From assembly GCF_018977255.1 (NCBI RefSeq), contig NW_024704891.1:1-64000 (forward strand): 64,000 bases of DNA. Reading direction: 5' to 3'. Of this stretch, positions 7,160 to 62,175 are shown piece after piece. The DNA comes from Callorhinchus milii. Lineage: Eukaryota. Each line of letters begins with the position of its first letter. The first letter of the stretch is position 1. The position numbers and the translations under genes were made by a program. Under the pieces are notes generated by a model, which saw only the letters and a list, made by a program, of their open reading frames with translations, searched no databases and was not told the origin of the DNA.

Positions 7160-7267
7160 CCTGCAGATGGCGCACTAAAGATACATATAACATGAGCTGC
7201 AACTCACAGAACATGTCACGTCTCTTTCTGTAACTAACTTGTTTTACAGCGATAACAGGTGCTTCCT
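7160..7267 (+). promoter_or_regulatory. CTCF-like core + E-box/ETS module copy 1
   Basis: CCTGCAGATGGCGC 7160-7173; CAGGTG 7256-7261 followed by CTTCCT. Confidence 0.6.
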
Positions 7268-7937
7268 TTCCCTGTTGTCATTGGTTCCCTCACACAGACT
7301 ATTGCTGCTTCAGCTGAAATGTACAAAGGTTTTACAAAACTGTGATAAGCGCAAGGCTTAGTTTGATGTAGAAGCGTTTCTTTGGTCGCTTTTTCCATCT
7401 TATTGCCTTTCTCTCAATTAAGCAGCCGCCCTTTAGTGGATATCACTGCGCATTAAATGTGACAGATTTTGTTGTGGGCACTCTGGTCATCTGTTTCGGT
7501 TTTATTTCAGAAGGAGACTTAAACGGACCTCATTTAAATAAAAGTTGGAATAGATGATACATCTTTATTGGTCGATTCATGTCTTGGACGCCATTTCAAA
7601 TACTAATGCACAAGAATAAAAAAACCAGTTGCCATTGCTGGAGAGAAGTTTGTTTCGGAGGTGGTAGCGAAGAGTTTAACTGAGAATATACTGCAAGGTG
7701 AATTGCTGGTGGGTGAAATCAAGGCTGTGTTCCCATCCTTTCCGAGACCCATTGGTTCCCAATCGCCGGCAGATCAAGTTCAATATCCTCTGGTGAGTGC
7801 GAAACGCCTACAATTGGAGACAGTGAACCACTGAACCCGTCAGATCAGCCGCTTCCTCACAACTTGTCGCTAAAGCAGCGACACAGCGATATACAAAGGA
7901 AGAGATCCCATTATCTGTCCACACCTCAGCAGCCAAC

Positions 7938-8756
7938 ATGACAGCTCTCTGCCAGTTACTGATAGCAATCCTCACCATAGCCGGTAAGTATGTGTGGAGA
8001 TGCCCAGGGCATAAAATTTACATTATACTTGATCAGAAGTTTAGTGACGAGAGCACTCACCTCACAAGCGAGAGGACCTGTGTTCGATTCCCGGGCAACG
8101 TGAAACATCCAGCAAATTTGCTTACACCTCAAGCCTGTGATTATCGGCAGTAAGTAGGAACGCGGATGATAATTGTTTCAGGGATAGCTTTCCGAGAGTA
8201 ATAATATATTAAAGAATAAATCAATCAATAGTAATTTCGTCAATCAATCCGTGACGGTTTGTGGGACACTGCAGTGCTTAATTAGCTGCAACGTTTCTCC
8301 CTCAAAATATGGAGTCAATTCTCATAATAATGTATTCTGTGTGCGCTTTGAGACGTCCAAACCGTGCGATAACGTGATATAGAAACGAAATTATAATTAT
8401 AATTATTATGATTGCAAATCTCCACTGAACGTTGCTCAGCAACATGTGTATTTTTTTGTTCTTGCAGATGTCTACGGGCAAGATGTAGTATCCCAATATC
8501 CTCCCGAGATAACAGATTTTGAAGGACAAAACTTTACACTGAACTGCAGTTATTCCACATTGCAGACTGCCTTCTGGTACAGGCAATATCCCGATGGAGC
8601 TCCTCAGTACCTGTTCAGGATATATTCCTCTGGAAAGGTAGACAACCCTCCTGACCGTTTCACTACCGAGCTGATCAAGGATAATAAAGTAATTGAGCTG
8701 CACATACTCGGGGCTGTTGTGGGTGACAGCGCTGTGTATTACTGTGCCCTGGACCC
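7938..8756 (+). CDS. TRAV: TCR V segment V2 (MTAL family)
   Basis: Leader 7938-7983 (MTALCQLLIAILTIA); V exon 8468-8756; RSS CACACTG 8757-8763, 23 bp, ACAAAAACT 8787-8795. Confidence 0.92.
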
Positions 8757-9352
8757 CACACTGTTACAGGAAGGCAGGTTCCCCGTACAAAAACTCAGCA
8801 AACAATCAAGAACTTAGGCAAGTTTCCTTGGTCGACATACTCACCAATATTTACCTAGCAGTGAGTAGGAACCCAGCTGTTAACCGGTTCGTGTATCGCA
8901 AATTTTCTTAATAATAATAATAATATTCCCTTCATAAGGAAATAATTAAAATTTATTCAATATACAACTCTTTTGGGGTAACTGCTGTGCATTAATGGCT
9001 GCAGCGTTTCGCAAATAAAGCATAGTGTATATTGCCTATCAGGTATGTTCAGCAACAGACTTTGAGACTTCTCGAACACGTGATAAGGCGTTGGAAATTA
9101 ACCAATTTTAGCGATTTAATTTCCAAGAGTCACCACAAGGCACACTCTGACGTTCCTAAACTTTTGCCTATTCCAAAAATTCAATTGACATATTCTGTTC
9201 ACTCTGTAATCTGAAAATCATTTTGAGATGTCTTCAAAACATATTGAGTCGCTATGTCAAGGGCGAGGATCATAATTTTTATTAATGCTCTCCGTATCTC
9301 AGTAAACAGAATTCGTAATGTTGGAGAGAAAGATCGAGAGTAAGAAAGAGAG

Positions 9353-9533
9353 NNNNNNNNNNNNNNNNNNNNNNNNNNNNNNNNNNNNNNNNNNNNNNNN
9401 NNNNNNNNNNNNNNNNNNNNNNNNNNNNNNNNNNNNNNNNNNNNNNNNNNNNNNNNNNNNNNNNNNNNNNNNNNNNNNNNNNNNNNNNNNNNNNNNNNNN
9501 NNNNNNNNNNNNNNNNNNNNNNNNNNNNNNNNN
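9353..9533. other. Assembly gap (N run)
   Basis: 181 N; the flanks match the paralog at 32460-32590, which holds a (GA)n tract. Confidence 0.98.
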
Positions 9534-10541
9534 TATATGGAAAAATTCCAGGTGTAGCGTGGATGCATGGAAATTAGTTATGAAAAAATATAAAAATTAG
9601 ATTTTTTTAGAAAATATTGTCACTCTAACCACCACAATTTGCGTGACGCTGATGTGTGCAATTCGTTACTGTGTTTCGCCCGATAATACGCTGTCACTAC
9701 GCTTGACAGAGTAACCTGTGTACCGATTTTAGACGTCTCGAAGACGTGATTAGGCGCTATACCAATAAATTGGATCATTATTCTATCTCTCTGTTTCATT
9801 GGGATATTCATAATGATGCTGATGGGTATCCCCATATTTCACATTCCAGCTGAACAAAAATAAATGCTAATATATGAAGTGTCATTCAGCGAAATAAACA
9901 GCAGAGAAAAATAACTTGAAGTAATGAATTATGCCAGAAATAATTGTGTCTTGTACGCAAACTTCTGAAACCCAGATGCATAGAGCAGAAATGGACCGGA
10001 AGGAAACTTTCCACCAATTGGGGCAGAGACATCTGAGAAACTGCTGATATTACGTGATTCCTCCTCTTTCGCTTCGAACCCTCGCAATGGCTCGTTTCAA
10101 CTTAATATCAACTTGACACCTGCCCCCGGGGACTTGATGCCAACACATAGTGTAGCCGTCTGCACACACTCAGGGTCTTCCACTGAGTACCTCGTCCTGC
10201 CTTCTTGTAACTATCGTAACAATACTTGATGCTTTATACAGCGCCTTAAGTCATCTCTGAGGCATATGAAAGCGCTTCACATGATAAACTGTAAAGTGTA
10301 GTGACTGCGTATTGTATGGTCGAAACTATAGAAACAATTGGACAAAACAGAGATAATCAAACAGTCGCGGGTCGAGTCCCAATTATCTTTTGAGGGATAA
10401 TTACCCCTTGAAAGCGATTCGCCAATTGACCATTGGATTCCTACTTCATGTTATGTAAACAGAGGCGTGTGGAGTGAGGAAAGTTGATTAAGCTTTCAAA
10501 GGAAACTTGGATTTGTTCATCAAAGCGCTGAAAGATTCGTT

Positions 10542-10962
10542 ATGAAGTGCGATTACACTTTAGTATTCCTGCTCCTGAAAGCTGCCGTGACCCTCTGGGG
10601 TGAGTGTGCTTTACAGAAATCGTAAGTAATTCTACTTAAATTAATGGGTGAGTTTCACAAACAAATTGTTTTGTATTTACCAGGAGTGAGTGGTCAGGAT
10701 ACAGTCTCCCAGTCGCCACTAACTGTGACAGTTGTGGAGAATGAACAAGTAATTATAAGCTGTTCCACAACAGAATCACAGGCGTTACAATGGTACAGAC
10801 AGTATCCGAACCAGGCCCTCAAACACTTGGTAACAGGAGAGACGGGAGTGCAGCAGAAGAAGAGTATCACAGCTACAATGAACTATAGAGAGAACGGCAG
10901 TAATCTGAGCATCACAGGCACAGAAGTAACAGACGCCGCCACCTACTTTTGTGCAGTGGAGA
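10542..10962 (+). CDS. TRAV: TCR V segment V3 (MKC family)
   Basis: Leader 10542-10599; 84-bp intron; V exon 10684-10962 (C..QWYRQ..DAATYFC); RSS CACAGTG 10963-10969, 23 bp, ACACAAACC 10993-11001. Confidence 0.9.
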
Positions 10963-12497: not shown

Positions 12498-12946
12498 ATG
12501 AAGCGCCAGTACACTTTGCTCTTCATCCTCCTGAAAGCTGCCGTGTTCCTCTGGGGTGAGCATGTTTCACCGATAAACCCCGCTTGAGCTTTGTGAGTCA
12601 TTGTATTTACTTCGACCACAATTAACGAGTGAGTTTCATTAACAGATTTTCTTGTATTTTCCAGGAGTGAGTGGTCAGGATACAGTCTCACAGTCGCCAC
12701 TCTCTGTGACTGTTTGGCAGAAGGAACACGTGTTTATCAGCTGTTCCACAACAGATACCAGTCAGGCCTTACAATGGTACAGACAGTATCCGAACCAGGC
12801 TCTCACACACTTGGTAACAGGAAAGACAGGAGAGCAGCAGAAGGAGAGGATCACAGCTACGATGAGCTATAGAGACGGGAAAAGTAATCTGAGTATCAGA
12901 CACACCGAAGTGACAGACGCCGCCACCTATTTGTGTGCAGTGGAGA
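12498..12946 (+). CDS. TRAV: TCR V segment V4 (MKC/MKR family)
   Basis: Leader 12498-12555; V exon 12665-12946; RSS CACAGTG 12947-12953, 23 bp, ACACAAACC 12977-12985. Confidence 0.9.
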
Positions 12947-13605
12947 CACAGTGAGACAGTTACATAGAGAGGCCGTACACAAACCTCCAGTGATCTGCCA
13001 GCAATTCCGCTCTTGTTCATCACAATAACTGCTCAGCACTCATTGCCTCTCAGTTTCCCTCAATTTGCTTGTTAACGAAGGGATGTCTATGTCATGTCTG
13101 CAGGACATGTGGTGTCCTGTAGCTCAATAGTGAGAGCGAAAGGACCTGGTTCGATTCCGGGCTGATTGCTTTTACGGGGTTAATGATTCCTTCAAAATGA
13201 CAAAACATATTAAAAAATTAGTCACACAACCCAATGGGACACTGAAGTTAAGACTCGGCTGCTTTGTTTCGCTCACACAGTATGAAGCCAATTCGTTTAC
13301 CGTGTATTATGTGAAGCACTTTGCGGCGTCTGGAAGATGCAGCAATGTGCAATAGCGAATGAAAAGTTTACAACTATAATTAAATTTAATCATGTTATTG
13401 TCGCAGTAATAACCTCAAAGTCCTGCTCTCTGTGGCTAAGCCGCCATATATACGAGCCTTTCTGTGGTGTTTTAATCAGCAGGATAACATCAAATACAAA
13501 AACTCATATTCAAATACAGCCATACGTAACGGGAAATAAAAAATGGGCAGAAAGATATTTGCCATCAAATGTCTCCAATTATACAGGTGTTGCAGCTGCA
13601 ATTCA

Positions 13606-13710
13606 CCAGCAGAAGGCGAACCCAGCACACATATAACATGAGCTGCAACTTATACAACTTTATCACTTTCCTTTCTCAGCTCGCCTTGCCGGCACTAACA
13701 GGTGCTTCCT
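13606..13710 (+). promoter_or_regulatory. CTCF-like core + E-box/ETS module copy 2
   Basis: CCAGCAGAAGGCGA 13606-13619; CAGGTG 13699-13704 + CTTCCT. Confidence 0.55.
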
Positions 13711-15128
13711 TTTACAGTTGGCATTGGTTCCTTCATACACTATTTCTGCTTCAGCTGAAACATACAAAGGTCTCTCTAAAGCATAAGTAACAAAAGGTTT
13801 AGTTCACTGAAGAAGCAGCTTCTGTGTCACTTTTTCTATATCTGTCTCCCAAATAACCAGTCGCCCTTAATCCGATCTCTCTGCTGTATAGTGCTTCTCT
13901 CCTGAAATGTTGTCGATATGGCTACCACCACACTTTCAGGCAATATATTCATGCAGTATACTGTGGGAAGCGCTTTCAGACGCATCACCGGCATCATATG
14001 TCAAAGGAACAAATGCAAACATATATATTATTATTCCTGGTTCAGGGTCACATTTATGTTGCAGTGTCTTACCACTGGGTGTCTCTCGGGCGCTGAAATT
14101 CTGACAAGACACCACTGGCTTGAAAGCCTGTGAAAAATGGATCAATAAAGCATATTCCTGCACACCGCTTCTAACCGTTTTCAGAAGGTTGCCAACCGCA
14201 TCCCATTGCTTGGTTGACACTTTCCATTCTGAGCAACAGATATACTCGAAACGTAGATTATTGGAATCAAAGTTTATTACAAATTGTATGGGATCAGTCG
14301 ACATAATGTACGGGTGTTTCAGGATTCTCTGACTGTTCTGCTCCCACAATTAATGAAAAATCTATTCCACATATCCGAATCAATCCTAAACCTGGTTTCT
14401 ACAGAATATAGAGATTTTTGGTATCTCTCTTCCTGAAACACAAATTTCTTCATACAGTATTCCTGCAAGTCGACCCATTATTAAGATCTGTGCTCTTTGC
14501 CAAAGCACATCTGGGTCCTATAGGTTGGTGGTTAGAACATTAGCCTCGCATGCAGTGGAGATTCACAGCATTGAGCAATTCTGCGCAAATTTGCTTACTG
14601 CACACGCTTCTGTTTAACCGACCAGTGAATAGGAACCCGGTTATCAGCCGAATGGCGAACAGTTTGCCAGGGGAATAACACCGTAAGAAAGTGGTAAATT
14701 GGTCACGCATTCAAGGATTGTATGCCTGGCACAGCTGTGTGCATCAGGTTGCCGAGGTTCACTCTAAAAGCACAGTCAAATTATTTTACCGTATATTCCA
14801 CAGACAATGCGAGACGTGTCCAAGACCTAATAAGGCACTTAGTATTATTATTATTTGTATAATTTCTTGAGTCTTTGTACTCAGGTCTCTCTGCACTGTC
14901 TCTTTGTTGCGTTACTATTGTTTGCCACAGCGAGGAGAAGTGAATCTGAATGTAAACGTTAGGGGGAGTCGCAATGCACCTCCACCAAAGATCACAGACA
15001 AGATAATGACGCGGGGATAAGAGACAACTCCTTAAATGGAGAAAAGTTTATCAACCAGACGCTACGTTTAGATAAATTCTCGTTACATTTCAACGGAAGA
15101 CATTGACGTGAATCGACGGCAGTTGAGA

Positions 15129-18080: not shown

Positions 18081-18483
18081 CACAGAGGCACAGATCAGCG
18101 ATTCCGCCCTACAAGAACTGCCTGTAGCTAAATGTTTATAGCACTCGCCTCGAAAGCAACCAAGCAAGCAAGATACGGGGGTTCAATTCACGGCAAAGTA
18201 TTTTGTGGCGTTTCGAAGATCTGATTTTGCACTGTATTAAATGCAACGATACTTATTATTATTAAGTACGATCATGTTATTTTCACAGAAATACTTCATA
18301 TATTTTGCTTTCTGCGGAGATCTGCACATGGTAGTCTTCCTCTGCTAATTGAACAAGTCGGAAAAAATAAGAAATATTAATTTTCATTAACGTAGCGACA
18401 TTCGTAACGGGAAAGTTATGACGGGCCGAAAGCAATTTGCTATCAACTGTCTCCAAATATACATGTGCTGTAGCTCCAATCCA

Positions 18484-18591
18484 ACAGCAGTAGTCGCACT
18501 AAAGACACACATAACATGAGCAGCGACTGACATAACTTCTCACGTTCCTTTCTGTAACTAACATCCTTGGCAGCAATAACAGGTGCTTCCT
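18484..18591 (+). promoter_or_regulatory. Module copy 3 (CTCF core decayed, E-box/ETS intact)
   Basis: ACAGCAGTAGTCGC at 18484; CAGGTG 18580-18585 + CTTCCT. Confidence 0.45.
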
Positions 18592-19161
18592 CTTACATTT
18601 GACATAGTTTCCTGATATGCACTGTTGCTACTTCAGCTGAAGTGTAAAAACTTTGAAGCATTATGATCACAAAACTTCGGTTGCTCAGGAAACATTATTT
18701 GCTTCACTTTTTATAGGTGTTGTCTTTGTCCAACACAAGCAGCCATCCTTAAGTGGATCTCACTTCGGTAATAAATATGTTAATTTTCGTTAAGATCTAT
18801 GCAGTCCTTTATATTTGTTTAGCTTGAAAAAGAGATTACAACCGACCTATTTTAATTTAGCTTTAGAATTCAAGAACTATCTCGTATCGCCTGTGAGATG
18901 AAACTGCCGAACTGGGTCCAAAACCAACAACATTCAGACGCATAAAAGCAAGTACCAGTAACAGAGGCAGACCCATTGGCTCCCAATCACCATCAGATCA
19001 AGTTCAAGTTCCTCTGGTTAGTGGGAAACGCCTACAGTTGTAAAAAATAAACCATTCAACACGTCAGATCAGCCGCTGCCTCACAACTTGTCACTGAAGC
19101 AGCAACACAGCGATGTACAAAGGAAGAGATCCCATTATCTGTCCACACCACAGCAGCCAAC

Positions 19162-21336: not shown

Positions 21337-22736
21337 CACAGAGGCACAGATCAGCGGTTCCGCCCTACAAAAACTGCCATGTGGGGTCCTGTAGCTCAGT
21401 GGTTACAGCACTTGCCTTACAAGTGATAGACGTTGGTTCAATGACCTGCAGAACGAATCATTGTGCAACTTTCCTTATTCCACACACTAGTCTCTGGTTA
21501 CCAGCAGTAAATAGGAAGCAGGTTGTTAATCGGTTGGAGTATCGATTTTTCAGAGGCAATAATTCCATCTGAATAATAGTGTTAATAATAATTTGGTCAC
21601 TTCATCCAATGAGTCAACGACAATTACAATTTGCTGCCGTGCTTCGCCCTCACACTATGCAGTCAATTCGTTTACTGCATATTGAATGAAGCACTGAGTG
21701 GCGTCTCGAAGATGTGATATGGCGCTGTATCAAACGCAACTATTATTATTGTTGTTATTAACTGTAGTCATGTTATCATTCCAGTAATAATTAAAAATGT
21801 CTTGCATTCTGGGGAGCGCTGCCATGTGCAAAATTCTTACTATGCTGCATTAGTCAGTAAGTAAACATCAAAACAAACTATTTCCGTTTATATTGCTTAA
21901 ACAAAAACTATTTCCGCTATCTGTAGAGAAACTGTTTCTGCTGGTGGTTGGGGGAATGCAGAATACGGCTGCAATAGAGCCAGTCCAGTTAGCAGAGAAG
22001 TTGGTAGGAAAAAAATACGAAAAATTTAAGGAAATCTGGAAAACTTCCACAAAGATTCTGGAGATGTTCGTTCCATTCATATTTTCCAGACTGAGTTGGA
22101 CACATTTATTTTAGCTCAGAATATCAAGGGTTACGAAGAAAAGGTTAGAATATGTGTTGAGAGATAAATCAAACATGATGTGATATAACGTTGGAACAAA
22201 CTCAAGGACCTGATGGTCTGCTCCTATTCCTAGTTAGCGCTTTCCACGTATGGGAGCGTTCTTGGCGAGTCACTAAAGAAACGAAACCATTTAGTGTATT
22301 GAAGTTAAAGAAGAATGAACATTTCATTTCATTTAAAGTCTAGTGAGCACATTTAACTTGCGACGACGTCCTGACGTGAACTGACTTGAATAAATGTCAA
22401 TATGTTGTCACTCTGGTGCAAAATGCTCCAAGTCAGCTAATTGTTCAGTCAAATGATATAATCGATGAAATAATAAGACAAGGAATTCAATAGAAATGGA
22501 GGAGCAAGTGGCGCAGCAAGTGTTAGCACAGAGACACGTCAATGTAAAATAATGTGAATGACACCGAATATCCGAATATTCCACAGAGGAAGATAAAATA
22601 TGGGGAACGAGCAGGGAAATTAGATTAATGCATAAACTTCCTGTGGAGAAGATAGCACCAAGGAAAAGTAAGACGGGCCCAAAATAATTATGCTATGAAA
22701 CCTCTCCAATTGTGTACGTATTGTAGTTGCAATCCA

Positions 22737-22847
22737 CCAGCAGATGGCGCACTAAACAAACACATATAACATGAGCTGCAACTCACATAATACGTCACGC
22801 TCCTTTCTGTAACTACCTTTCCTTTACAGCAGTAACAGGTGCTTCCT
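22737..22847 (+). promoter_or_regulatory. CTCF-like core + E-box/ETS module copy 4
   Basis: CCAGCAGATGGCGC 22737-22750; CAGGTG 22836-22841 + CTTCCTG. Confidence 0.65.
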
Positions 22848-23827
22848 GTTGCAGTTGACATATTTCACTCATACACACTATTGCTGCTTCAACAGAAATT
22901 TACAAATATTTGCCTGAAGTATTAACATAAGGCCTCGGTTGCTCATGAAACAATTTCTATCTCACCTATTTTATATTATTGCCTTTATTCTCGATTAGCA
23001 GCCGTTCTTAAATTGTTTTCTCCGCGGTATAGCAATTATCTGTTGACATTTGTTACAGTATCGGCTTCTGCCACACTTTCAGGCAATGCATTCAAGATCA
23101 GAACCACAGGCAGTGTGAAAAAAAAATCTGCTCCTTACAGTTTGTTCAGACCACTGCATTAAAAGTGAACATTAAGCTATTTAATACGTTTATTACTATG
23201 CAATTTAAAAAGATCATTGATATGTCATCCCGCAACTGAAACATTCGAAAGCGACGAAACTGCTCACTGTGAAATACAGTTTGGATTACGTTCTGCTGTT
23301 CTGGTCTGACACTCTAGAGCAGGCCTGGCTGTCAGTATTGTTGGTGAAGCTTGTCCTACCGAGGAGATATTAAACCCAGGCCCAGGCGGCTTGCATGAAG
23401 GGACTATAGTGATGCCATTGCAATGCTCCAGAAAGTTTTCAACCGGTGTCTGGGCAGACATTCCATCGGTTAAATTCATCTTTCATTCATAGCTGTTCGA
23501 AGGAAAGTGTTGCATACAAATTGTTTGAGGAGGTTTGAGACGTGTCGACTAAATGACAAGGCTGTATTTGATAAAAGCATTTCTGAAACCCGTGTGTTTG
23601 TGTGGGGGGAGTGGAGGGTGCGGAGCGCTCTAATGCAACGGAAGTGATTGGGCGATGCGCCTCAGTGCGGGCGGGGCAGTGACTGTGTGACGCAGCTCTG
23701 TGGGCGTGGCAGTGGCTGTGTGGGCGGGGCTCTGTGTGGGCGGGGCTATGACTGTGTGGCTGCTGAGCCAAAAAGCCCCATCAATCCACATTGGGGATTT
23801 AATGTCAGACACGGGATCAGGATGCTC

Positions 23828-30229: not shown

Positions 30230-30421
30230 CTTCGAATGCCTTGCTTTATAGGCAGGACTGCCCGTGCAATTCTTCATCTGTGTTTTTTAATAAGTAGAAA
30301 AACTTTTTAAAAAATCTAATTGCATTACTTAGCGCCAATTCAAAACGCGATAATTAAGGCGGGACAGGAACAACTTCCTATCAAGTCTCTCCAATTGCAC
30401 ACTTGCTGTGGCCAAAATGCA

Positions 30422-30523
30422 CCAGCAGATGGCACACTAAACACACATATAACATGAGCTACAATTTGTATAACTTGTCATTTTCATTTCTGTCACTAAC
30501 ATTCTTGGCAGCGATAACAGATG
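30422..30523 (+). promoter_or_regulatory. CTCF-like core + E-box module copy 5
   Basis: CCAGCAGATGGCAC 30422-30435; CAGATG 30518-30523. Confidence 0.55.
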
Positions 30524-31090
30524 CTTCATCTCGGGATTGTCGACAATACAGCCCTCACACACTTCTGAGTTTGAATTTAAATACAGACTGTCAGCTTCAA
30601 GTGCAAACTTCTATCCTGAACAAACAACATTTTGGCACATAAGTGAAAATATTAAGAACGGAGGCAGGATATCAACTCAGATTTGATGTTAGAAAGTAAT
30701 TCCTTAATCTTTCCGGTTTGGCTGCACGATTCAACGATTCATCGACCAAATGACTGCATTCACAAAAATTATAATAATCATTTCATTTGATATAGCGCCT
30801 GATAACTTCTCCGAGACGTCTCAAGGAGATTCACAGATTATAATACAAAGTAAATTGCTGAGCGGTGTAACGCGAGTCTATGTTTCCATCGTCGCCCAGA
30901 CCGATTGACTCCCAATCCGCGGCAGATCAACTTCAAGATCCTCTGGTCCGTGGTAAACGCCTACAATTGGAGGTAATAAACCACTGAACACGTCAGATCA
31001 GCCGCTGCCTCACAACTTATCAATGAAGCAGCAACACAGCGATATACAAAGGAAGACATTCCATTATCTGTCCACACCTCAGCAGCCAAC

Positions 31091-32460: not shown

Positions 32461-32506
32461 GAAAGATCGAGAGTGAGAAAGAGAGGGACACAGAAAGACA
32501 CACAGA

Positions 32507-33587: not shown

Positions 33588-34008
33588 ATGAAGTGCGATT
33601 ACACTTTAGTATTCCTGCTCCTGAAAGCTGCTGTGACCCTCTGGGGTGAGTGTGCTTTACAGAAATTTTTTGTAATTCTACTAAAATTAATGGGTGAGTT
33701 TCGCAAACAAATTGTTTTGTATTTACCAGGAGTCGGTGGTCAGGATACAGTCTCCCAGTCGCCACTAACTGTGACAGTTGCGGAGAAGGAACAAGTAATT
33801 ATCAGCTGTTCCACAACAGAATCACAGGCGTCACAATGGTATAGACAGAATCCGAACCAGGCCCTCAAACACTTGGTAACAGGACAGACAGGAGAGCAGC
33901 AGAAGAAGAGGATCAGAGCTACAATGAACTATAGAGAGAAGGGCAGTAATCTGAGCATCACACGCACAGAAGTGACAGACGCCGCCACCTACTTGTGTGC
34001 AGTGGAGA
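33588..34008 (+). CDS. TRAV: TCR V segment V12 (MKC family)
   Basis: Leader 33588-33645; V exon 33730-34008; RSS CACAGTT 34009-34015, 23 bp, ACACAAACC 34039-34047. Confidence 0.9.
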
Positions 34009-40741: not shown

Positions 40742-41077
40742 GGAGTCCTGTAGCTCAGTGGTTGAGCACTCGCTTTGCAAGCTAGAGACCTGAGTTCAAT
40801 TCCAGGCAGGACGAAACCTTGGGCAAGTTTCCTTACTCCACACAGAGCCTAATAATAATCCCTCCAAAAACCAAAAAAAAACAATAATAAAAATTGGTCA
40901 TTTTCAATCCATGACTGTTTGTGGGACATTGCTGTGCGCAATTGGCTGCCGCGTTCGCCCACAAATATACAGTCAATTCACTTTACAGTGTGTTCTGTGA
41001 AGCGCTTTGGGACGTCCTCCAGACGTGAAAAGCGCTAAGTCAAATGCAAGGATTATTGATTATTATTATTATTATTA
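40742..41077 (+). mobile_element. tRNA-derived SINE, young full-length copy
   Basis: A/B boxes, CCTTGGGCAAGT core, stem-loop tail, (ATT)n. Confidence 0.88.
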
Positions 41078-41090
41078 ATGAGCAAATGTT

Positions 41091-41421: not shown

Positions 41422-41572
41422 CTCCGTCGGTGCTGTTTTGATAAATAGGGAAATATCAAAAACAACAGGTTCCATTTTTAAAGCGCCATTTACAATAAGG
41501 AACGATAAGTTTGACCGTGAACTCCTGGCTGTCAAATGTCCCCAATTGTGCACGTGTTGCCGCTACAATCCA

Positions 41573-41683
41573 CCACCAGATGGCGAAACAAGAACAATTA
41601 TTAACATGAAATGCAACTTACATAACTTGTCAGGTTCGTTTCTGTAACTGACTTTTCAGTGGCATCTGTAACAGGTGCTTCCT
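41573..41683 (+). promoter_or_regulatory. CTCF-like core + E-box/ETS module copy 6
   Basis: CCACCAGATGGCGA 41573-41586; CAGGTG 41672-41677 + CTTCCTG. Confidence 0.6.
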
Positions 41684-42649
41684 GCTACAGTTGTTAAAGT
41701 TCCCTCGCATACACCTTTGCATATTCAACTGTAGATTACAAAGATTTGGCTAAAGCGTGGCTCTATGCTGCTCAACAAAGTCATTTAAATTTCATAATTT
41801 ACATTTTATTGTCTTTCTCCTAAATAGGCAGCCGCCCTTAAGTGGATCTCACTGCGATAGTCAAGGTGCTTGATTTTGTAACTGTAATCTGGTCATACGT
41901 TTTGGTTTAAATTGGGAAGGATTAAATCTGAACTTGATTATTTTAATTCAGGCTTTTCGGTTTGCAGCTTCCTTACTTGGATGCAATGCTAAGAAAAAAT
42001 GGACAATGATAATGATGATAATAATAATAATGATGATAATAACAATAGTTGCAGTGGTAATAATAGTATTAATAGTAATAATAATTCTTGCCTTTTTATA
42101 CAGAGCCTTGCAAGTTGCAGGAGGCAGCAAAGCTTAATATGCGCTTATGTAAAAAGAAGTGACGCACTAATTCCCCCGATAAATAAATAAAGTGATTTGA
42201 GGCTTTTATCCATGTGTTGTTGAAAAGACAGCCTTTACAGTATCCTCAATTTGAATTTCATTCCAGACTGAGAGCTCAAAATACCGACTTGGATCCTGAA
42301 GCAACAACATTTTGATACATAACAGAAAGTGCCGCCAACAGAGACAAGTTGTCATTTCAGCCTTCATGGTATTAAGTAAATACTTATTCGTTTAGGCCAG
42401 GCCGCATGTTTCCTTGATCCGTCAACGAAATCCTTGCATTCATCATGTCCAGGCTAGATTACGCCAAATGTCCGCTCATTGTATAATCTGCAACACAGTT
42501 CACAAGTTACAAACAATGCAGAAATCTGTATAGAGTGTTTTTCCCTCACATGTTTCCAACTGTCGGTGTTCCCAAGCAATATCTGCTGGCGCCGAAACGA
42601 CGGAAGCTGGAGTTCAAAAACCACAGCAATATTAAATTTGCACTGGATT

Positions 42650-45448: not shown

Positions 45449-45781
45449 GGAGTCCTGTAGCTCAGTGGTTAGAGCACTCGCTTTGCAAGCCAGATACCTG
45501 AGTTCAATTCCAGGCAGAGGGCGAAACCTTGTGCAAGTTTCCTTACTCCACACAGAGCCTAATAATAATAATCACTCAAAAACCAAAAACAATAATAAGT
45601 TGGTCACTTTCAATCTACGACTGTTTGTGGGACATTGCTGTGCGCAATTGGCTGCCGCGTTCGCCCGCAAATATACATCAATTCACTTTACAGTGTGATC
45701 TATGAAGCGCTTTGGGACGTCCTCTTGACATCAAAAGCGCTATATCAAATGCAAGGATTATAATTATTATTATTATTATTA
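45449..45781 (+). mobile_element. tRNA-derived SINE, young full-length copy inserted into an older SINE tail
   Basis: Head begins right after gtgaagcgctttc of an older copy; A/B boxes and (ATT)n present. Confidence 0.85.
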
Positions 45782-46150: not shown

Positions 46151-46884
46151 TTTGAGCGGGTCTCTGAGTGTGCGGGACAGTGACTGGGTGACCTGGCTGT
46201 ATGGCAGGGTCAGCAATTGTGCGAGCTAATCTCTGTGTGGGGGGGCAGTGGATGGATGTTAGGGACAAAGTGTCGGTGGGGCAGTGACTGTGTGGGAGGG
46301 GCAGTGACTGTGTGGGCGATGCTCTGCGTGGGCGGGGCAATGGCTGGTGGGCGGAGTTATCTGTGGGCGCGGCAGTTACCGTGTGGGCGGGGCAGTGAGA
46401 GAGAGCAACTCGGTTCGATTCCGACAGTAAATTTATGAAACCTGTTGTTAGTCGATTGGCGGATCGCATTTCCAGCGGTAATAATTCAAGATAATAATAT
46501 TAATAATAAATTGGTCTTTTAATCCAATGGTCACGGTTATTTCGCCCACAAAGCATCTGGTGAATTCGTTTACCGTACATTATTTGAAGCGCTTTGAGGC
46601 GTCTCGTAGTTGCGATTTGGCACTGTATCAAATTCATGGATTATTAATATTCATATTATTAATAAAGATGAACATGTTATTGTCAAACAATTAGTTTTGA
46701 ATGCTTTGCTTTCTATATTAGCTGACCATACACTTCTTCCTCTGATTTTTTTAATAAGTAGAAAAACATTTTAAAAAATCTAATTGCATTACTTAGCGCC
46801 ATTCAAAACGCGATAATTAAGGCGGGACGGGAATAACTTGCTCTCAGTTGTCTCCAATTGCACACTTGCAGTAGTCACAATCCA

Positions 46885-46990
46885 CCAACAGATGGCGAAC
46901 CAAACACACATAACGTGAGCAACAATTAAACACGATTGTCACTTTCATTTCAGTAAATAACATCAATGGTAGCGATAACAGGTGCTTCCT
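46885..46990 (+). promoter_or_regulatory. CTCF-like core + E-box/ETS module copy 7
   Basis: CCAACAGATGGCGA 46885-46898; CAGGTG 46979-46984 + CTTCCTG. Confidence 0.55.
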
Positions 46991-48022
46991 GTTACAAATT
47001 GACATTGTTCCCCTCATACACACTATTGTACAAGGGTTTGTCTAAACTGTGATTAACACAAGGCTTAGTTCGATCAATAAGCAATTTCTATGTCACTTTG
47101 TTGCCTTTCTCTCAAATGAGTGGATCTCACTGCAGCAACTTGTTAGATTTGGTTAAGGGCCACATGGTCATTTGTTATGGTTTACTTTGGAAAGGAGATT
47201 AAAATGGACCGCATCTAAATTAAATTGGGGACCGATGGATCATGTTATATAGTCGATTCCTGCCTTGAGCACCATTTGAAACATGACTGTACAAAAATAA
47301 TAAAAATAATAATATTTGCAATTGATATAGCTCCGTTTATTTTGGAGGTGGTAGCGAAGAGTTTAGTGCGCTCATGTGACAAGTTATTGTAGGCAATAAC
47401 AATAGACAATAGGCGCACATTGATATCCCCACATATATTAGGTGACTGATAGCTTTCATCTCGGGGTTATTGACAAAACAGCCCTCACAAACTTCTAAAT
47501 TTGAATTTAGGCATAGACTATCAGCTCAAAGTGCAAACGTGTGTCCTGAACCAACAACATTTTGACATATTAGAGAAAATATCACAAACAGAGGCAGGAT
47601 GTCACATCAGCATTGATGTTGGAAAGTAAATCTTTATTCTTTGAGATTAGGCTGCCTGATTCCACGATTCATCAACCAAATAAATGCATTCACAAAAATA
47701 AAAATAATGCTTTCATTTGTTGTAGCGCCTGATCACTTCTTTCAGACGTCTCAAAGAGCTTCACAGAATATACTGTAAATTAGTAAATTGCTGAGGGGGG
47801 AGAGCGAGACTGTGTTCTCCTCCTAGCCCTGTCCCACTGGCTCCTAATCCACGGCAGAACAACTTGAAGATCCTCTGGTTAGTGGGAAAAGCCTACAATT
47901 GGAGGTAATAAACCACTGAACACGTCAGAACAGCCGCTGCCTCACAACTTGTCACTGAATCAGCAACACAGCGATATACAAAGGAAGAGATCACATTATC
48001 TGTCCACACCTCAGCAGCCAAC

Positions 48023-48838: not shown

Positions 48839-50310
48839 CACACTGTTACAGGAAGGCAGATTCCCCGTACAAAAACTCAGCAGGCAGTCATATCTTGCTC
48901 TCACACATTTCACTTGGTGCCTTCAACAGACTGACAAACTTATGCAATGATAACAGGGAGGTTGGTGTAGCTCAGTGGTTATAGCTCACGCCTCACAAGC
49001 GACTGATGCTGTTTCAATTGCCAGCAGAACAAAACGTTGTGCAAATTTCCTTATTCCACACACCCGTCTCTGTTTGCAAGCAGTAAGTAGCAAGCAGGTT
49101 GTTAATCGATTGGCGGTTCGATTTTCCAGAGGTAATAATGCATTCGGAATAAAAGTGTTGAGAATAAATTGGACACAATGGGACAGCGATGCGTTCAATT
49201 TGTTACCGTGCTTTACACTCACAACGTACAGTCATTCCGTTTACTGTATATTGAAAGAAGCACTGTGCGGTGTCTCGAATATATGATATCGCACTATATA
49301 AAACGCAACTATTATTATTATCATTGTAATTAACTGTAGTCATGTTACCATCCAAGCAGTAAATCAATAAAAATCTATTGCTTTCTGGGGAGCGCTGCCA
49401 CATGCAAGTTCGTTTCCATGCTGCTTTAGTAAGTAAGAAAATATCAAAACATACAAGTTCCATTTATGTTGTTTACACAAAAAATATTAAATCTATTTAT
49501 AGAGAAACTGTTTCCTCTGGTGGATGGTGGAATGCATAACAATGGTGCATTAGAGCCAGTCCTGTTAGCAGTGAAATGGGAAGATCCAAATTACGAAACA
49601 TTTGAATAAATCAGGAAAACTTCCACAAAGAATCTGAGGATGTTTTTTCCATTTGTATTTTCCAGACTGAGTTGGATGCATTTATTTTATCTCAGAATTT
49701 GAAAGGGTACGGAGAAAAGGCAGGAATGTAAGTTGAGGGATAGATCAGCCATGATGTAATCTAACGTTGGAACAGGCTCAAGGAGCTGATATCCTCCTCG
49801 TATTCCTATTCAACACTTTCCACGTAGGGGAGCGACTTGGCGAGTCACTAAAGAAGGAAAACATTTTTGTGTATTTACGATATAGAAGAATGAACATTAA
49901 TTTAAGTTTTAGGTCTGGAGAACACATTTACCTTGGGACGTCCTCCAGACATGAAACAGCATTACCTAATTGCCAGTCTTCTGTTATTCTGTTGTAAAAT
50001 GCTCAAAGTCAGCTAAGTGTTTAGTCAAATAATATAATCGATGAAGTAAAACGGCACGGAATTGAATTAAAATTGGAGAGCAAGTGGGGCAGCGAGTATT
50101 TGCACTGAGACACGTCAAGTTAAGAGAATGTGAATGACATTTTACTCGAGTGTTCCAGGCAAGAACAGAAAATATAAGGAAAGATCGTGGAAATGAGACT
50201 AATGTATAAAATTTCAGTGTTCAAGACGCCACCAAGGAAAGGCAAGACGGGCCCAAAATAATTATGCTATGAAACCTCTCCAATCGAATACGTGCTCTAG
50301 CGACAATCCA

Positions 50311-50422
50311 CTAGCAGATGTCATACTAAACGAACACATATAACAAATGAACTGCAACTCACATAAGTTGTCAAGTTCCTTTCTGTAAGTAACTTCCTTT
50401 GCAAAGGTAACAGCTGCTTCCT
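50311..50422 (+). promoter_or_regulatory. Module copy 8 (CTCF core decayed, E-box/ETS intact)
   Basis: CTAGCAGATGTCAT at 50311; CAGCTG 50411-50416 + CTTCCTG. Confidence 0.45.
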
Positions 50423-51583
50423 GTTGCATTTCACATAGTTAACTCATACACACTATTGCTGCTTCAACTGACATTTACAAATATTTACCTAAAGTATTAA
50501 TACAAGATTTAGGTTGCTCAAGTAACAATTTCTATCGCACATATTCTATATTGTTCCATTTTTCCCCAAATAGCAGCCGCTGCTAAATTGTATTCCCTAC
50601 TATATAGCAATTCTCTCTTGAAAGTTGTTAGATTATCGGCTTCTGCCACCCTTTCAGGCAATGCGTGCAAGATCAATATAACTCGCCGTGCGAAAAAAAA
50701 GTACTTATCCCCTCCTCACCTTATGTTCAGGCAACTACACTGAACGTGAATATTAAGCTATTTAATAAGTTTATTACCATATAATTAAAAAAGATCATTG
50801 ACATTTCATCCCGCAACTGAAACATTCAAAAGCAACCGAAGTGCTCACTGTGTAAAATATATTGGATTAATTTCTGATGTTCTGTGTTGACACACCAGAG
50901 CTGGCCTGGCTGTCGGGTTAGCTTTTCCTACCAAGGAGATATTAAACCCAGGTCCAGGCGGCTTGCATGAAGGGAGTGTAATGATACCATTGCACTACTT
51001 GAGAAAGAACAAGGTTTCTATCTATAGACTTTCCATTGGTAAAATGCATCTTTCATTCGTAGCTATTTGTGGGACAGTGTTGTATACAAATTGGAGGCTA
51101 AACTGACAAATTCGGTACTTGATATTATAACTTGCGAGGAACTTTGAGGCGAACCGACGAAATGACAAGACTGCATTTGATCTAACAATTTCTCAAGCAC
51201 AATTAATGAACACAATTGTAAGGGCATGTCTTATTCAACATTGTAATAATAACGCTAATAAATGTAAATGTTGCATTTGATATACTGCCATATTACGTCA
51301 TTGAGACGTCTCAAACGTGTGGGCGGGGCGCTGTAAAACAACGGCAGAGATTGGGCGATGCGGCTCAGTGCGGGCGGGGCAGGACTGAGAGACGTTGCTC
51401 TGTGGGCTTGACATTGGCTGTGTGGGCGGGGCAGTGACTGAGTGACGTAGCTTTGTGGGCGTGGCAGTGGCTGTGTGGGCGGGGCTCTGTGTGTGGGCGG
51501 GGCTGTGACTGTATGGCTACTGAGCCCCAAAGCCCCATCAGTCCACATTGGGGAGATAATGTCAGACACGGGATCAGGTGCTC

Positions 51584-54420: not shown

Positions 54421-55909
54421 CACAGTGCTCCGTGTCTAAGAGGGACCTGTACAAAAACATTCTATGTTTACTGTCGCTCAATGTTCAGAGCATTCGCCTC
54501 GCAAGCGAAGTAAATGGGTTCGATTCCCGGCAGGACAAAACGTTGGGAAAGTTTCCTTACTCCTCACGACTCTGTATATCCCTCAGTAAGTAGGATCTTG
54601 GCTGTTAGTCGATTAGCGGATCGCTTTTCCTGGAGCAACAATACCTTAACAAAATAAAAAAAAAACGGTTACCGATCATATCACTGTCAGTGTGACACCG
54701 TTGTGCGACATTGACGTAAGAGTTAAATCCACAAAACAAACAATTTCGGCCGTAATAAAAACAGTCACTGCAGTTTAAGTTATTACCGTGAAACGCTTTG
54801 AGTCGTCTAGAAGAAGTGATATGACGAAATATCAATAGGAAAGCTTATGATTATAAGGCACAGTTTTTACGCGGATACTCAAAATCAGGGAGATGGTTTT
54901 CCTCGTGTGCCAGACACACATTGTAGGAAAATAAATGTTAAAATAAAGAGCCGCTTTCAGCGAAATAAACAGTACAAAACCATAGCTGTGAATTGGACGA
55001 GTAAATGTATGTTTTGTACCCAAACTGCTGTAACCCATAAGCCAAGAGCGGAAAGGGGCATGAAGGACACTTGCAATTAAATGGGGCAGAGGCACATGGC
55101 TCCATCGCTTTCGCTTTGAACCCTCGTAATGGCTCGTTTCACCTCGTTATTAAATCGACACCCGGGGATGTGAAGCCAACACACATTAGTTCTATATCGA
55201 GGCATCTGCACACACTCAGGTCCACTGAATCCGTCGTCCTAACTTAGTTTGACTGTCTGTATCATAGCAAACCTTAACGTTTGGAACAGCGCCTTGTGTC
55301 GTCTCTGCGGTGTCGCATTGCGCTTCCTATCGTTTACTGTAATTTGTAGTGTTAAGTATGACTGTGCATTTTGAATAAGAAACGAGAATATTATCCGCAG
55401 AAAGGAAGCCGATAATCGACTAAGAACCTGGTTATTATTTACAGCAAGGTAAACAGGTGTGTTTAGGGAGTAACGAAAGATGGCCAACATTTCGCCTTGC
55501 CGTGAATTGAAGCAACATCTCCCGCTTATGTTGCAAGAGCAATAAGCATTGAGCTACAGGAGTCCACAGATGGCAAACATTTGTGGACTCATGTATGTGT
55601 TTTCGATTAACTTAAACATGGTTATAACTTGCTACAGGTGTCAGACACTCAGCTGAACTAAGACACATCAGTGATGGATGAGAACCAATGGAGCAAAGAG
55701 ACGGGAGAGCAGAGAGGATGACGCAAAGTGACAGAGACACAAGGTTTGTACATAACCCTCAGACCTGCTCCATCACTGTATATGCCAACTTCTGTATGTT
55801 GTTTCCTGTCCGGCTCTCCTCACGGTATCTTACAGCCTCCCAGGAAACATTCTCCAATTTGCACCATCAACGCTCTCTCAACGCCACTTGCCATTAAACA
55901 CATCCGACA

Positions 55910-56709: not shown

Positions 56710-57121
56710 CACAGAGGCACAGATCAGCGATTCCGCCCTACAAAAACTGCCACGTGGAGTCCTGTAGCTCAGTAGTTATAGCACTCGTCTCACAAGCATC
56801 AAGCAAGCGGGATACGTGTGTTCGATTCACGGGAAAGCGCTTTGAGGCGTTTCGACGATGTGGTTTGGCACTATAATAAATGCAACGATTATTATTATTA
56901 AATATGATCATGTTATTTTCACAGAAATAGCTTCATACATTTTGCACTCTGGGGAGACCTGCACTGGAAGTGTCCTTCTCTGCTATTTCAACAAGAAGGA
57001 AACAATAAGAAACATTAACTTGCATCTACGTAGCGACATTCATAGGGGGAATGTTAAGACGGGCCGAAAATAATTTGCAATCAACTGTCTCCAAATGTAC
57101 ACATGCTGTAGCTGCATTCCA

Positions 57122-57210
57122 CCAGCAGATGTAACACGAAAAATAATATAACATGAGCTGCGACTGACATACCTTGTCACGTTCCTTTATGTAACTGACA
57201 GGTGCTTCCT
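57122..57210 (+). promoter_or_regulatory. Module copy 9 (CTCF core partly decayed, E-box/ETS intact)
   Basis: CCAGCAGATGTAAC at 57122; CAGGTG 57199-57204 + CTTCCTG. Confidence 0.45.
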
Positions 57211-58229
57211 GTTGCAGTTGACATAGTTTCCTGACATACATGTTGCTGCTTCAGCTGACGTGTAAAAACCTTGTGTAAAACATGATTGGCACAAAATTTA
57301 GATTACTCAAAGAACAGTGTTTGTGTCACATTTTAGATGTGTTGTCTTTCTCTACCAGAAGCATTCTCCCTCATGTGGATCTCACTGAGATAAAAAATGT
57401 GATAAATCTTGTTATGAGTAATATGGTCATTTATGTTTGTTTAATTTGAAAACGAGATTACAACTGACCTCGTTTAACTTAAATTAAGAATTGAAACGCA
57501 ATCTCTGATACACTGGGAGCTCAAACTGTCGATCTGGGTCCAGAACCAATAACATTCAGACACATAGGAGAAAGTACCAATAACAGATGCCGGTTTTCAA
57601 CTCAGCCTTGATAGAAAGTAAACCTTTTTTAAAGCTAGGCTGCATTGTTCAAGATCAACCAAATGAATGCATTCAGAACAGTATTGAAAATAAAAATGCT
57701 CATTTGATATACATCCATACTGCCTCTCGAAGGCGTCCTGAAGCGCTTCACAAATGCACAGTAAAGCAAATTGTTATTGGGTGAAACGCACTCCTCGCAA
57801 CCTCGCCCAGACCCACTGGCCTCCAATCCGCGGCAGATCAAGTTCAAGATCCTCATTAGAGAAAGTAACATGAAAAGCGGAAAAGTTGTTACCTCAGCCT
57901 TGATGACAGAAACTGAACCTTATTCCTTTCGGCTCTGCTGCATGGCTCAACGATTCACTTCAAATCGGTTCACTCATTAAACAATAAAATGAATTGTTGT
58001 TGTGTGATACGTGCGGCAATATTCCCATACCAACCCAGACCCATTCGCTTCAAATCGAGAGAAGATCGAGTTCAAGATCCTCTGGTTAGTGGGAAACGCC
58101 TACAATTGGAGACAGTAAACCACTGAACCCGTCAGATCAGCCGCTTCCTCACAACTTGTCACTGAAGCAGCAACACAGCGATATACAAAGGAAGAGATCC
58201 CATTATCTGTCCACACCTCAGCAGCCAAC

Positions 58230-59747: not shown

Positions 59748-60596
59748 ATGACAATGTATGTCTATGTGGTAGCAGTGATCATTACCTTGTCAGGTAAGCG
59801 ACAAACTCGCTCTATTAGTCTGCTTCATGTGCATATTATCCAATGAATATATATTTTTGCATTACATAACCAATACGGTACACGACTCATGCATTCCTGC
59901 AGCAAACGTGTTGACTTGGGTTTAGTTCCCGGCTTGGACATAGCGAAACCTCAGGCAAGTTTCCTTCCTCCACACACGCACCACTTTTTACATCGAGATA
60001 TGTAGGTACCCGTTCGATTGTCGATCGTCGGATCAGGTTTAGGTGTTAATAATCGCTTAACGGGAACCAGTGATAATAATTCTATCAGTCATTCCATGAC
60101 TTTTTATTAGGAAAATGCTGTGCGCAATTTGTTGCCACGTGTCGCCCACACAATACACATTCTCAGAATATTCTATTAAGCATTTGGAGACGCATTGATG
60201 TAGTATGGCGCTGTATGAAAAGCAATAATTTGTACTGGGATTATTGTTATGGTATTGAACGCTGATATGGGTCTGGTTCCCAGGACATTGTGGAGGAGAC
60301 GCTGTAACACAGCTCCAATCTACTGTGACAGTGACTGAAGGGGAGGATGTTTACCTGCAGTGCAATTATACAGCTACAAGCGAATACAATACCTATCTGT
60401 TCTGGTACCGTCACTTTCCCAACAAACCTCCAGAATATATCCTTAGCACAGACACCAACAACAGGATCAAGAACGGCGCGGACTTTGCAGAAGAACGTTT
60501 CTCAACGAATGTGTCTAAAGCGGAGAGAACCGTCCCATTAAATATATTGCAAGTGAGAGTTACAGACTCCGCGGGGTATTACTGTGCACTGAGCCC
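59748..60596 (+). CDS. TRAV: TCR V segment V20 (GHCGG family)
   Basis: Leader 59748-59793; V exon 60284-60596; RSS CACAGAG 60597-60603, 23 bp, ACAAAAACT 60627-60635. Confidence 0.92.
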
Positions 60597-60905
60597 CACA
60601 GAGGCACAGATCAGCGGTTCCGCCCTACAAAAACTGCCATGTGGGGTCCTGTGGCTCAGTGGTTACAGCACTTGCCTCACAAGCGATAGACGTTGGTTCA
60701 ATGACCTGCAGAACGAATCATTGCGCAACTTTCCTTATTCCACACACTAGTCTCTGGTTACCAGCAGTAAATAGGAAGCAGGTTGTTAATCGGTTGGAGT
60801 ATCGATTTTTCAGAGGCAATAATTCCTTCTGAATAATAGTGTTAATAATAAATTGGTCACTTCATCCAATGAGTCACCGATAATTACAATTTGCTGCCGT
60901 GCTTC

Positions 60906-60983
60906 GCCCACACAGCCACTGCCACGCTACGTCACTCAATCACTGCCCACACAGCCACTGCCACGCTACGTCACTCAATCACT
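60906..60983 (-). repeat. 2 x 39-bp insertion
   Basis: GCCCACACAGCCACTGCCACGCTACGTCACTCAATCACT twice; absent at the paralogous site 21641-21660. Confidence 0.9.
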
Positions 60984-62065
60984 GCCCTCACAATATGCAG
61001 TCAATTCGTTTACTGTATATTGAATGAAGCACTGAGTGGCGTCTCGAAGATGCGATATGGCGCTATATCAAATGCAACTATTATTATTAATGTTATTAAC
61101 TATAGTCATGTTATCATCAAAGTGGTAACTAAAAATGTCTTGCTTTCTGGGGAGCGCTGCCACATGTACGATTCTTTCTATGCTGCATTAGTAAGTAAGT
61201 AAACATCAAAACAAACAATTTCCGTTTAAATTGCTTAAACAAAAACTATCTGTAGAGAAACTGTTTCTTCTGGTGGTTGGGGGAATGCAGAATAAGGGTG
61301 CATTAGAGCCAGTCCAGTTAGCAGAGAAATTGGGGGAAAAAAATTAGGAAAAATTTAAGGAAATCTGGAAAACTTCCACAAATATTCTGGAAATCTTGGT
61401 TCCATTCACATTTTCCAGACTGAGTTGGATACATTTATTTTAGCTCAGAATATCAAGGGTTACGAAGAAAAGGTTAGAATATGTGTTGAGAGATAAATCA
61501 GCCATAATGTAATATAACGTTGGAACAAACTCAAGGACCTGATGGTCTGCTCCTATTCCTATTTAGCGCTTTCCACGTATGGGAGCGTTCTTGGCGAGTC
61601 ACTGAAGAAACGAAACAATTTAGTGTATTGAAGTTAAAGAAGAATGTACATTAAATTTCATTTAAAGACTAGTGAGCACATTTGCATTGCGACGTCCTCC
61701 TGACGTGAACCGACTTGAATAAATATCAATATGTTATCACTCTGGTGCAAAATGCTCCAAGTCAGCTAATTGTTCAGTCAAATGATATAATCGATGAAAT
61801 AATAAGACAAGGAAATGAATAGAAATGGAGGAGCAAGTGGCGCAGCAAGTGTTAGCAGAGAGACACGTCAATGTAAAAGAATGTGAATGACACCGAATAT
61901 CCGAATGTTCCAGAGAGGAAGATAAAATATGGGGAACGAGCAGGGAAATTAGACTAATGCATAAACTTCCTATGGAGAAGATAGCACCAAGGAAAGGCAA
62001 AACGGGCCCAAAATAATTATGCTTTGAAACCTCTCCAATTGTGTACGTGTTGTAGCTGCAATCCA

Positions 62066-62175
62066 CCAGCAGATGGCGCACTAAACAAACACAAATAACA
62101 TGAGCTGCAACTCACATAACACGTCACGCTCCTTTCTGTAACTACCTTCCTTTGCAGCAGTAACAGGTGCTTCCT
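62066..62175 (+). promoter_or_regulatory. CTCF-like core + E-box/ETS module copy 10
   Basis: CCAGCAGATGGCGC 62066-62079; CAGGTG 62164-62169 + CTTCCTG. Confidence 0.65.

Follow-up and report, generated by a model that had tools for sequence, protein, structure and literature searches.

The 64-kb window analysed here (positions 1 to 64,000 of contig NW_024704891.1, from the chimaera Callorhinchus milii) is a T-cell receptor (TCR) alpha/delta V array, with V segments that we sort into families A to F, and a non-coding module of about 360 bp is found in it in ten copies. All ten carry an E-box (CANNTG), joined in nine of them to an intact ETS core, and this E-box/ETS composite evolves about seven times more slowly than the module around it. 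The stretch, 11-15 bases long, is probably a working transcription-factor site. We lean slightly, judging by motif and arrangement, towards reading the whole module as a dispersed regulatory element of the V array, similar to the PAIR elements of the mouse Igh locus, whose selected core would be a juxtaposed ETS/E-protein site.

Conservation of the E-box/ETS composite

The whole window was searched with a 369-column profile of the module (nhmmer). Exactly ten copies were recovered, all on the + strand, with no further degenerate copy and no non-module match better than E = 0.008, and the count of ten out of ten is therefore not an artefact of how the copies were selected. As listed in a preliminary description of this DNA, the composite reads CAGGTGCTTCCT in eight copies, CAGATGCTTCAT in the copy at 30518 and CAGCTGCTTCCT in the copy at 50411 (copies are named here by the first base of their E-box; Table 1). 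The E-box is thus kept in all ten copies, as CAGGTG in eight and as CAGATG and CAGCTG in one each, and CTTCCT is kept in nine; the full arrangement CANNTG-C-TTCC is present in 9 of the 10. The distance of 77-100 bp from the start of a CTCF-like core to the E-box, also given in that description, holds throughout. Read on the minus strand, the composite is AGGAAG-CACCTG, that is, an ETS core joined to an E-box, extended to CAGGAAG-CACCTG in six copies.

The composite is specific to the module. The string CANNTGCTTCC was matched 10 times in the window against 0.74 matches expected from shuffles; nine of the matches are the modules and one, at 5796 on the minus strand, is unrelated. Since the module copies are paralogues, this count alone is not independent evidence. 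Looser ETS/E-box composites outside the modules numbered four (two of them in family-C V exons), and shuffles of the whole window gave 1.4 in all.

Changes per column were counted by parsimony on the tree of the copies, and relative rates were obtained by maximum-likelihood (ML) scaling of the tree with a likelihood-ratio test (LRT). The tree is 2.0 substitutions per site long, with about 80% of its length on terminal branches, and the module average is 1.46-1.5 changes per column. From the other columns of the module, 16.0 parsimony changes would be expected in the 11 columns of the composite; 3 were counted (P = 5e-5 for the window as specified beforehand). The ML rate of these 11 columns was 0.14 of the module average (LRT p = 9e-7). 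The flanking columns are thus not equally conserved, in line with the selection that the preliminary description had proposed for this site. In two separately made alignments the composite was the most conserved window of the module, with a scan-corrected P of 0.003-0.005 as estimated by column shuffles. With the tree made up mostly of terminal branches, the constraint was at work once the copies existed.

Both halves of the composite share this constraint, the GGAAG half, with 1 change in 6 columns, varying as little as the E-box, and it reaches three bases (TAA) 5' of the E-box, so that the 15-mer TAACAGGTGCTTCCT has an ML rate of 0.135 (p = 8e-9). Slow evolution was also observed in a CCAAT block (6 changes against 14.6 expected, P = 0.009; ML rate 0.31, p = 6e-4) and in ATATAACATGAGCTGCAAC (15 changes against 27.7 expected, P = 0.006; ML rate 0.43, p = 2e-4).

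Two of the three changes in the composite occurred in copy 30518 and one in the healthy copy 50411, where CAGGTG became CAGCTG. The latter remains an E-box, of class A. Variation had been described as limited to the NN positions of the E-box. This stands for the two E-box substitutions, which are both in NN, but they are two events in one column, the fourth base, for which our arithmetic gives a chance of about 0.11, and the third change, in copy 30518, falls in the ETS site and destroys its GGAA core. On the tree this copy has the longest branch (0.43-0.45); its 3' half is beyond alignment, and it looks released from constraint and decayed throughout. The four modules that are without an intact family-A gene upstream still retain the composite.

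A candidate regulatory element of the V array

The locus is a lymphoid antigen-receptor array, as the preliminary description had supposed, with TCR alpha/delta V segments, recombination signal sequences (RSSs) and V-set matches. In such an array the closest likeness to the module that we know is offered by the PAIR elements (Pax5-activated intergenic repeats) and the V8E elements associated with them, from the distal VH part of mouse Igh. The PAIR sequence, conserved and 470 bp long, is repeated 14 times among the VH genes; it is bound by Pax5, E2A, CTCF and YY1 and contains a long non-coding RNA (lncRNA) promoter. PAIR elements in general are presumed to raise the recombination of nearby V genes, and PAIR4 with V8.7E has been shown to promote it, acting on V genes over about 100 kb (PMC10390877). 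Like them, the module is a conserved non-coding repeat of a few hundred bp, with about ten or more copies in V spacers, and it is tied to one V family: it lies 0.3-1.8 kb after the RSS in 7/7 family-A genes, and its divergence follows that of the family-A leader intron (r = 0.85). E-protein and CTCF sites are common to both, in the module as motifs only (an E-box in 10/10 copies, a CTCF-like core with no more than two mismatches in 5/10). The two differ in locus and animal, Igh in mouse as opposed to TCR alpha/delta in a cartilaginous fish, and the module core is a juxtaposed ETS/E-box pair. The likeness is one of arrangement and motif; no membership of the PAIR family by descent is claimed, and homology between mouse Igh and chimaera TCR elements is not expected.

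The pairing of the two sites has a counterpart in human T-lineage cells. In Palii et al. 2011 (PMC3034015), a juxtaposed Ets/E-box composite (TAL1/E-protein with ETS1) marks T-lineage Jurkat cells specifically, E-protein homodimers favour the CAGGTG variant, and a CAGGAA(A/G) Ets motif is likened to the ETS1-specific variant found in T-cell enhancers. For human T-lineage cells, a juxtaposed Ets/E-box site and the assignment of CAGGTG to E proteins made in the preliminary description are both documented. The module composite is alike in having the ETS core beside the E-box, in the CAGGTG variant and, in the six copies that read CTTCCTG, in the CAGGAAG-type ETS flank. The human composite was defined by chromatin immunoprecipitation sequencing in leukaemia cells, and the likeness drawn here is one of composition and adjacency. 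A literature search found no paper for the HOMER string AGGAAACAGCTG, and the string is not used as evidence.

Under the regulatory reading, an E protein of the E2A/HEB type and an ETS-family factor of the ETS1 type would jointly bind the composite in thymocytes. Each module would thereby act on its surroundings as a small enhancer, or would serve sterile transcripts as their promoter, and the chromatin around neighbouring V segments would open, giving these segments a higher chance of use in V(D)J recombination, in the manner of the PAIR and V8E elements of mouse Igh. The CTCF-like motif, about 80 bp upstream, forward on the V-gene strand and pointing 3', would be an ancestral part that is kept in some copies only. 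A narrower proposal makes each module a V-embedded accessibility enhancer with a cooperative E-protein/ETS1 site, the TCR counterpart of mouse Igh PAIR/V8E, with the CTCF site as an optional, decaying accessory; in this full form we hold it, by analogy, as tentative and rather doubtful.

The CTCF-like core itself is not significantly slower than background, and here the flanking columns come close to being equally conserved. Its 15 columns showed 17 changes against 21.9 expected (P = 0.16), a rate of 0.65-0.78 of background (ML p = 0.06). The ten copies, all on the + strand, have 1, 1, 1, 2, 2, 3, 3, 3, 4 and 5 mismatches to CCASYAGRKGGCRSY, so that only five are within two mismatches of the consensus. 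With this rate and with good cores in half of the copies, the suggestion that each cassette carries its own insulator is not upheld. The decay of the core in three copies, noted at the same time, is confirmed: GGC is lost in 18580, 50411 and 57199, which all retain CTTCCT. The ancestral module probably had a genuine CTCF site here, which has not been maintained in every copy. In three copies the CpG of the core was lost via CG-to-CA changes, and one may speculate that this is the pattern expected of methylated, unbound sites.

Similar to the module, the V part of mouse Tcra/Tcrd has CTCF elements in its V-V spacers, with 144 bound sites, many of them upstream of V promoters and 129 directed towards J-C (PMC5859386). 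The ten motifs of the module likewise share one direction, on the V-gene strand and pointing 3'; they differ in that a good motif is present in only half of the copies, with no significant conservation of the core. The 3' end of the module carries a second CTCF-like motif in reverse orientation, CCACTWAAGGGCGGC, of which only two copies have a good version (7425-7439 and 41831-41845, minus strand) and whose rate is that of the background. Further matches to the CTCF consensus on the minus strand (10935-10949, 12919-12933 and 33981-33995) are at the end of framework region 3 in all three family-C V exons, coding ...DAATYFC, and are probably coincidence.

Several points weigh against a regulatory function of the module. 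The evidence of constraint comes from paralogues within one 64-kb window, and the column-shuffle test assumes independent columns. Constraint on the entire module is not clear, the rate of all columns being 0.90 of the tree made from the same columns. The V genes on either side of the decayed copy 30518, A4 and B3, retain intact reading frames, so a V gene can stay intact without an intact module. Sequence cannot name the factor: ACAGGTGC also fits repressors of the ZEB/Snail type, and TAACAG resembles a MYB site.

The accessibility and choice of V segments are known mostly from mouse Igh, Igk and Tcra, and local V-array enhancers such as PAIR4-V8.7E have been shown to be important only recently. 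A literature search found no report of CTCF or promoter elements in elephant-shark TCR loci. If the modules do work as V-embedded accessibility enhancers, the presence of the module in a holocephalan would date dispersed local-enhancer control of V usage to the earliest jawed vertebrates, and the logic of local V-array enhancers would be old and not B-cell-specific. The copies also form a natural experiment, with 30518 lacking the ETS core and half of the module, three copies lacking the CTCF core and one carrying CAGCTG. These natural variants mean that V-usage data from thymus could test each motif without engineering.

Competing explanations and the descent of the module

Among the alternatives, the one that survives best, although we consider it unlikely, is that the 15-mer is selected for another reader or role: a repressor of the ZEB1/Snail type (CAGGTG), an overlapping MYB-like site (TAACAG) or the core promoter of a non-coding transcript. 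The low rate of the 15-mer, with its constrained TAA 5' of the E-box, would fit such a reader. By the generally known preferences, the CAGCTG of the healthy copy 50411 is an E-protein site and not one for ZEB or Snail, and a strict CAGGTG reader is less likely because both E-box changes lie at the fourth base. A reader of the E-box only would leave the equally invariant GGAAG half unexplained. A promoter is suggested by two further conserved elements upstream, a CCAAT box at about 130 bp and a TATAA-like block at about 65 bp, by the low rates of the CCAAT block and of ATATAACATGAGCTGCAAC, and by the lncRNA promoter of the PAIR elements (PMC10390877); a promoter role and ETS/E-protein binding are, however, mutually compatible.

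The module was also considered as the promoter of the V gene downstream of it, and this was rejected as the main reading. The B, D and F genes each have a module 0.4-1.9 kb before the leader ATG, and none of the A, C and E genes has one directly in front. From the E-box to the leader ATG the distance is 0.57-2.1 kb, and family-B leaders possess a conserved proximal region of their own, which the alignment places, as a TATA-like region, about 50 bp before the ATG.

In a second alternative the module has simply persisted, neutrally, from the duplication of cassettes, and its invariant block is a cold spot that arose by chance. In its favour, all the copies are paralogues sharing ancestry, and the module overall evolves at a roughly neutral rate, like the family-A leader intron and its own flanks. 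Over 15 pairs the module had a mean identity of 0.70, compared with 0.63 in the family-A leader intron and 0.84 in the A V exon; the leader intron reached 0.77 in A1-A3 and in A1-A7, the pairs that align end to end besides the near-identical A3-A7. In subgroups with alignable flanks the module was 0.82-0.84 identical and the flanks 0.75-0.79. The block departs from this background by a scan-corrected P that holds in two alignments and by its LRT, on a long tree with mostly terminal branches. It contains no CpG, yet the non-CpG columns of the module average 1.45 changes, and the tracts homogenised by gene conversion would be long, not of 15 bases. We judge the neutral explanation improbable.

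As module identities track the upstream family-A genes, the module spread within a unit made of an A gene and its 3' spacer. Co-evolution of the module with the downstream V gene, under constraint on the whole module, was tried and discarded: third codon positions in the V exons of families B, D and F have reached saturation (identity 0.33-0.41), modules before B and D genes are as similar (0.68-0.74) as those before two different B genes (0.71), and the distances follow the upstream A intron.

It is more improbable still that the module is a transposable element or a repeat resembling a short interspersed nuclear element (SINE), with the block reflecting selection on a master copy, for instance for an internal promoter. 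The module is a short dispersed repeat, pieces of SINEs derived from transfer RNA (tRNA) adjoin several copies, and the D-type copies have a sharp 5' homology limit at -170. Around the E-box, about -170 to +190 is common to all ten copies, and the homology of individual pairs extends over -170..+190, -240..+280, -340..+300 or -548..+155, and up to +252. Limits that are nested and variable in this way, without fixed termini, point to the differential decay of an old duplicated segment, not to a mobile element with fixed ends. Moreover, all ten copies run in the same direction as the V genes, none contains an Rfam or tRNA match, and by our arithmetic about 13 changes would be expected in the block on terminal branches, against 3 observed.

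Least probable of all is a signal at the RNA level, either a GT splice donor (CAG/GTGCTT) of a non-coding 5' exon, which AACAG/GTGCTT resembles and to which CTAAC, a pyrimidine run and CAG 10-35 bp upstream could be added, or part of a structured RNA: with both E-box changes at the fourth base the would-be +1 G is changed in 30518 (A) and in the well-kept 50411 (C), so the donor fits poorly, the proximal region of the family-B leaders speaks against a 5' exon, and the consensus fold of the ten copies reaches only -3.5 kcal/mol across 404 columns, its covariation term (+0.75) being unfavourable, and no module has an Rfam match.

Organization of the V array

A six-frame pattern search and tblastn over the window identified 20 V segments, all on the + strand. 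Nineteen of the V exons are intact and one is truncated, and the intact ones end with a heptamer, a 23-bp spacer and a ACAAAAAC nonamer. The family labels are our own and cover seven A genes (one truncated), five B, three C, two D, two E and one F, with a difference of 60-75% between families at the protein level. A Pfam V-set match was obtained in all 6 V exons scanned, one per family. The top protein matches of the V exons were immunoglobulin-like proteins of Callorhinchus milii with 87-90% identity, and protein searches with family-A and family-B V exons returned UniRef entries of Callorhinchus milii and one alligator protein. Leader exons were located for families A, B, C, D and F and for one of the two E genes. 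With modules abbreviated as mod, the truncated A gene as Ap and a long interspersed nuclear element as LINE, the order of the array is A-mod-B-C-C-mod-A-mod-B-A-mod-D-E-A-mod-B-C-(LINE)-Ap-mod-F-mod-B-mod-D-E-A-mod-B-A-mod. The coordinates of the modules and of related features are collected in Table 1.

Table 1. Module copies, family-A genes and the assembly gap in the 64-kb window (positions from the first base of the window).
Feature	Position	Strand	Context and details
Module copy 1	7085..7450	+	Between A1 and B1; composite CAGGTGCTTCCT 7256-7267; CTCF-like core 7160-7174, 2 mismatches; nhmmer E=2e-105
Module copy 2	13531..13888	+	After C2, no upstream family-A gene; composite CAGGTGCTTCCT 13699-13710; CTCF-like core 13606-13620, 3 mismatches
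Module copy 3	18409..18770	+	Between A2 and B2; composite 18580-18591; CTCF-like core decayed, 5 mismatches
Module copy 4	22661..23029	+	Between A3 and D1; composite 22836-22847; CTCF-like core 22737-22751, 1 mismatch
Module copy 5, decayed copy	30347..30689	+	Between A4 and B3; composite CAGATGCTTCAT 30518-30529, ETS GGAA core broken
Module copy 6	41498..41859	+	Between truncated A5p and F1; composite 41672-41683; CTCF-like core 41573-41587, 2 mismatches
Module copy 7	46810..47135	+	Between F1 and B4, no upstream family-A gene; composite 46979-46990
Module copy 8	50235..50603	+	Between B4 and D2; composite CAGCTGCTTCCT 50411-50422; CTCF-like core decayed, 4 mismatches
Module copy 9	57047..57391	+	Between A6 and B5; composite 57199-57210; 21-bp deletion just upstream; CTCF-like core decayed
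Module copy 10	61990..62357	+	After A7; composite 62164-62175; CTCF-like core 62066-62080, 1 mismatch
Family-A V segment A1	5366..6246	+	Leader, intron of about 0.5 kb, V exon, 23-RSS; example of the seven family-A genes
Other family-A leader ATGs	16940, 20489, 28337, 38968, 55910, 59748	+	38968 truncated
A5p, truncated family-A pseudogene	39430-39750	+	Matches other A genes only to residue 76
Assembly gap	9353-9533	.	B1-C1 spacer; 1.9 kb after module copy 1, 4.0 kb before copy 2

The paralogous B3-C3 spacer, with 91 bp at this place, is colinear with the sequence on both sides of the assembly gap as far as its edges. The gap therefore interrupts a non-coding spacer and neither touches nor hides a module. 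Beyond residue 76, A5p continues in sequence that reads like an RSS spacer and nonamer, from which we infer that Cys104 and the heptamer were deleted.

Two observations concern the surroundings of individual modules. Copy 13699 is followed by a leader-like ORF (open reading frame) at 15366-15410 (+), MRLFTAQCAATCLL..., which resembles the family-F leader MRLFTVCLVLGTV...; no V exon lies before A2, the next V gene, and the ORF is probably what remains of an F-type V gene that has been lost from the 3' side of this module. The 3' flank of B4 (48925-50234) is homologous to a family-A 3' flank (21349-22660), beginning near the RSS, which suggests that an unequal exchange near the RSS placed a family-A spacer and its module behind B4. 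No V relic was detected inside the modules by tblastn of all of them. The ORF at 61737-62081, considered as an inverted V relic or a minus-strand coding exon, is V-like in 'VDCSYNT' and was rejected, having neither WYRQ nor other V landmarks.

Rfam matches resembling tRNA were found on the + strand at 39732-39788, 40744-40814, 45455-45517 and 54467-54538, two of them being called tRNA-Ala by ARAGORN. In some cases they are followed by a GCGCTTTGAG...ATTATTATT tail. They are the heads of tRNA-derived SINE copies and lie outside the modules; similar SINE pieces lie just upstream of 7 of the 10 modules. The LINE between C3 and A5p has an ORF of 780 amino acids at 35789-38131 (+) with a reverse-transcriptase domain (RVT_1, E = 1e-36); ORFs at 3493-4627 (+) resemble the C-terminal part of this ORF and have no Pfam match. 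A tandem array at 2503-3504, with a 26-bp unit in about 38 copies, translates to proline/serine-rich low-complexity ORFs. At the 5' edge of the V array there is an H1-like gene or fragment, an ORF at 871-1179 (+) that matches the globular domain of H1/H5 linker histones (Pfam PF00538, E = 4e-9).

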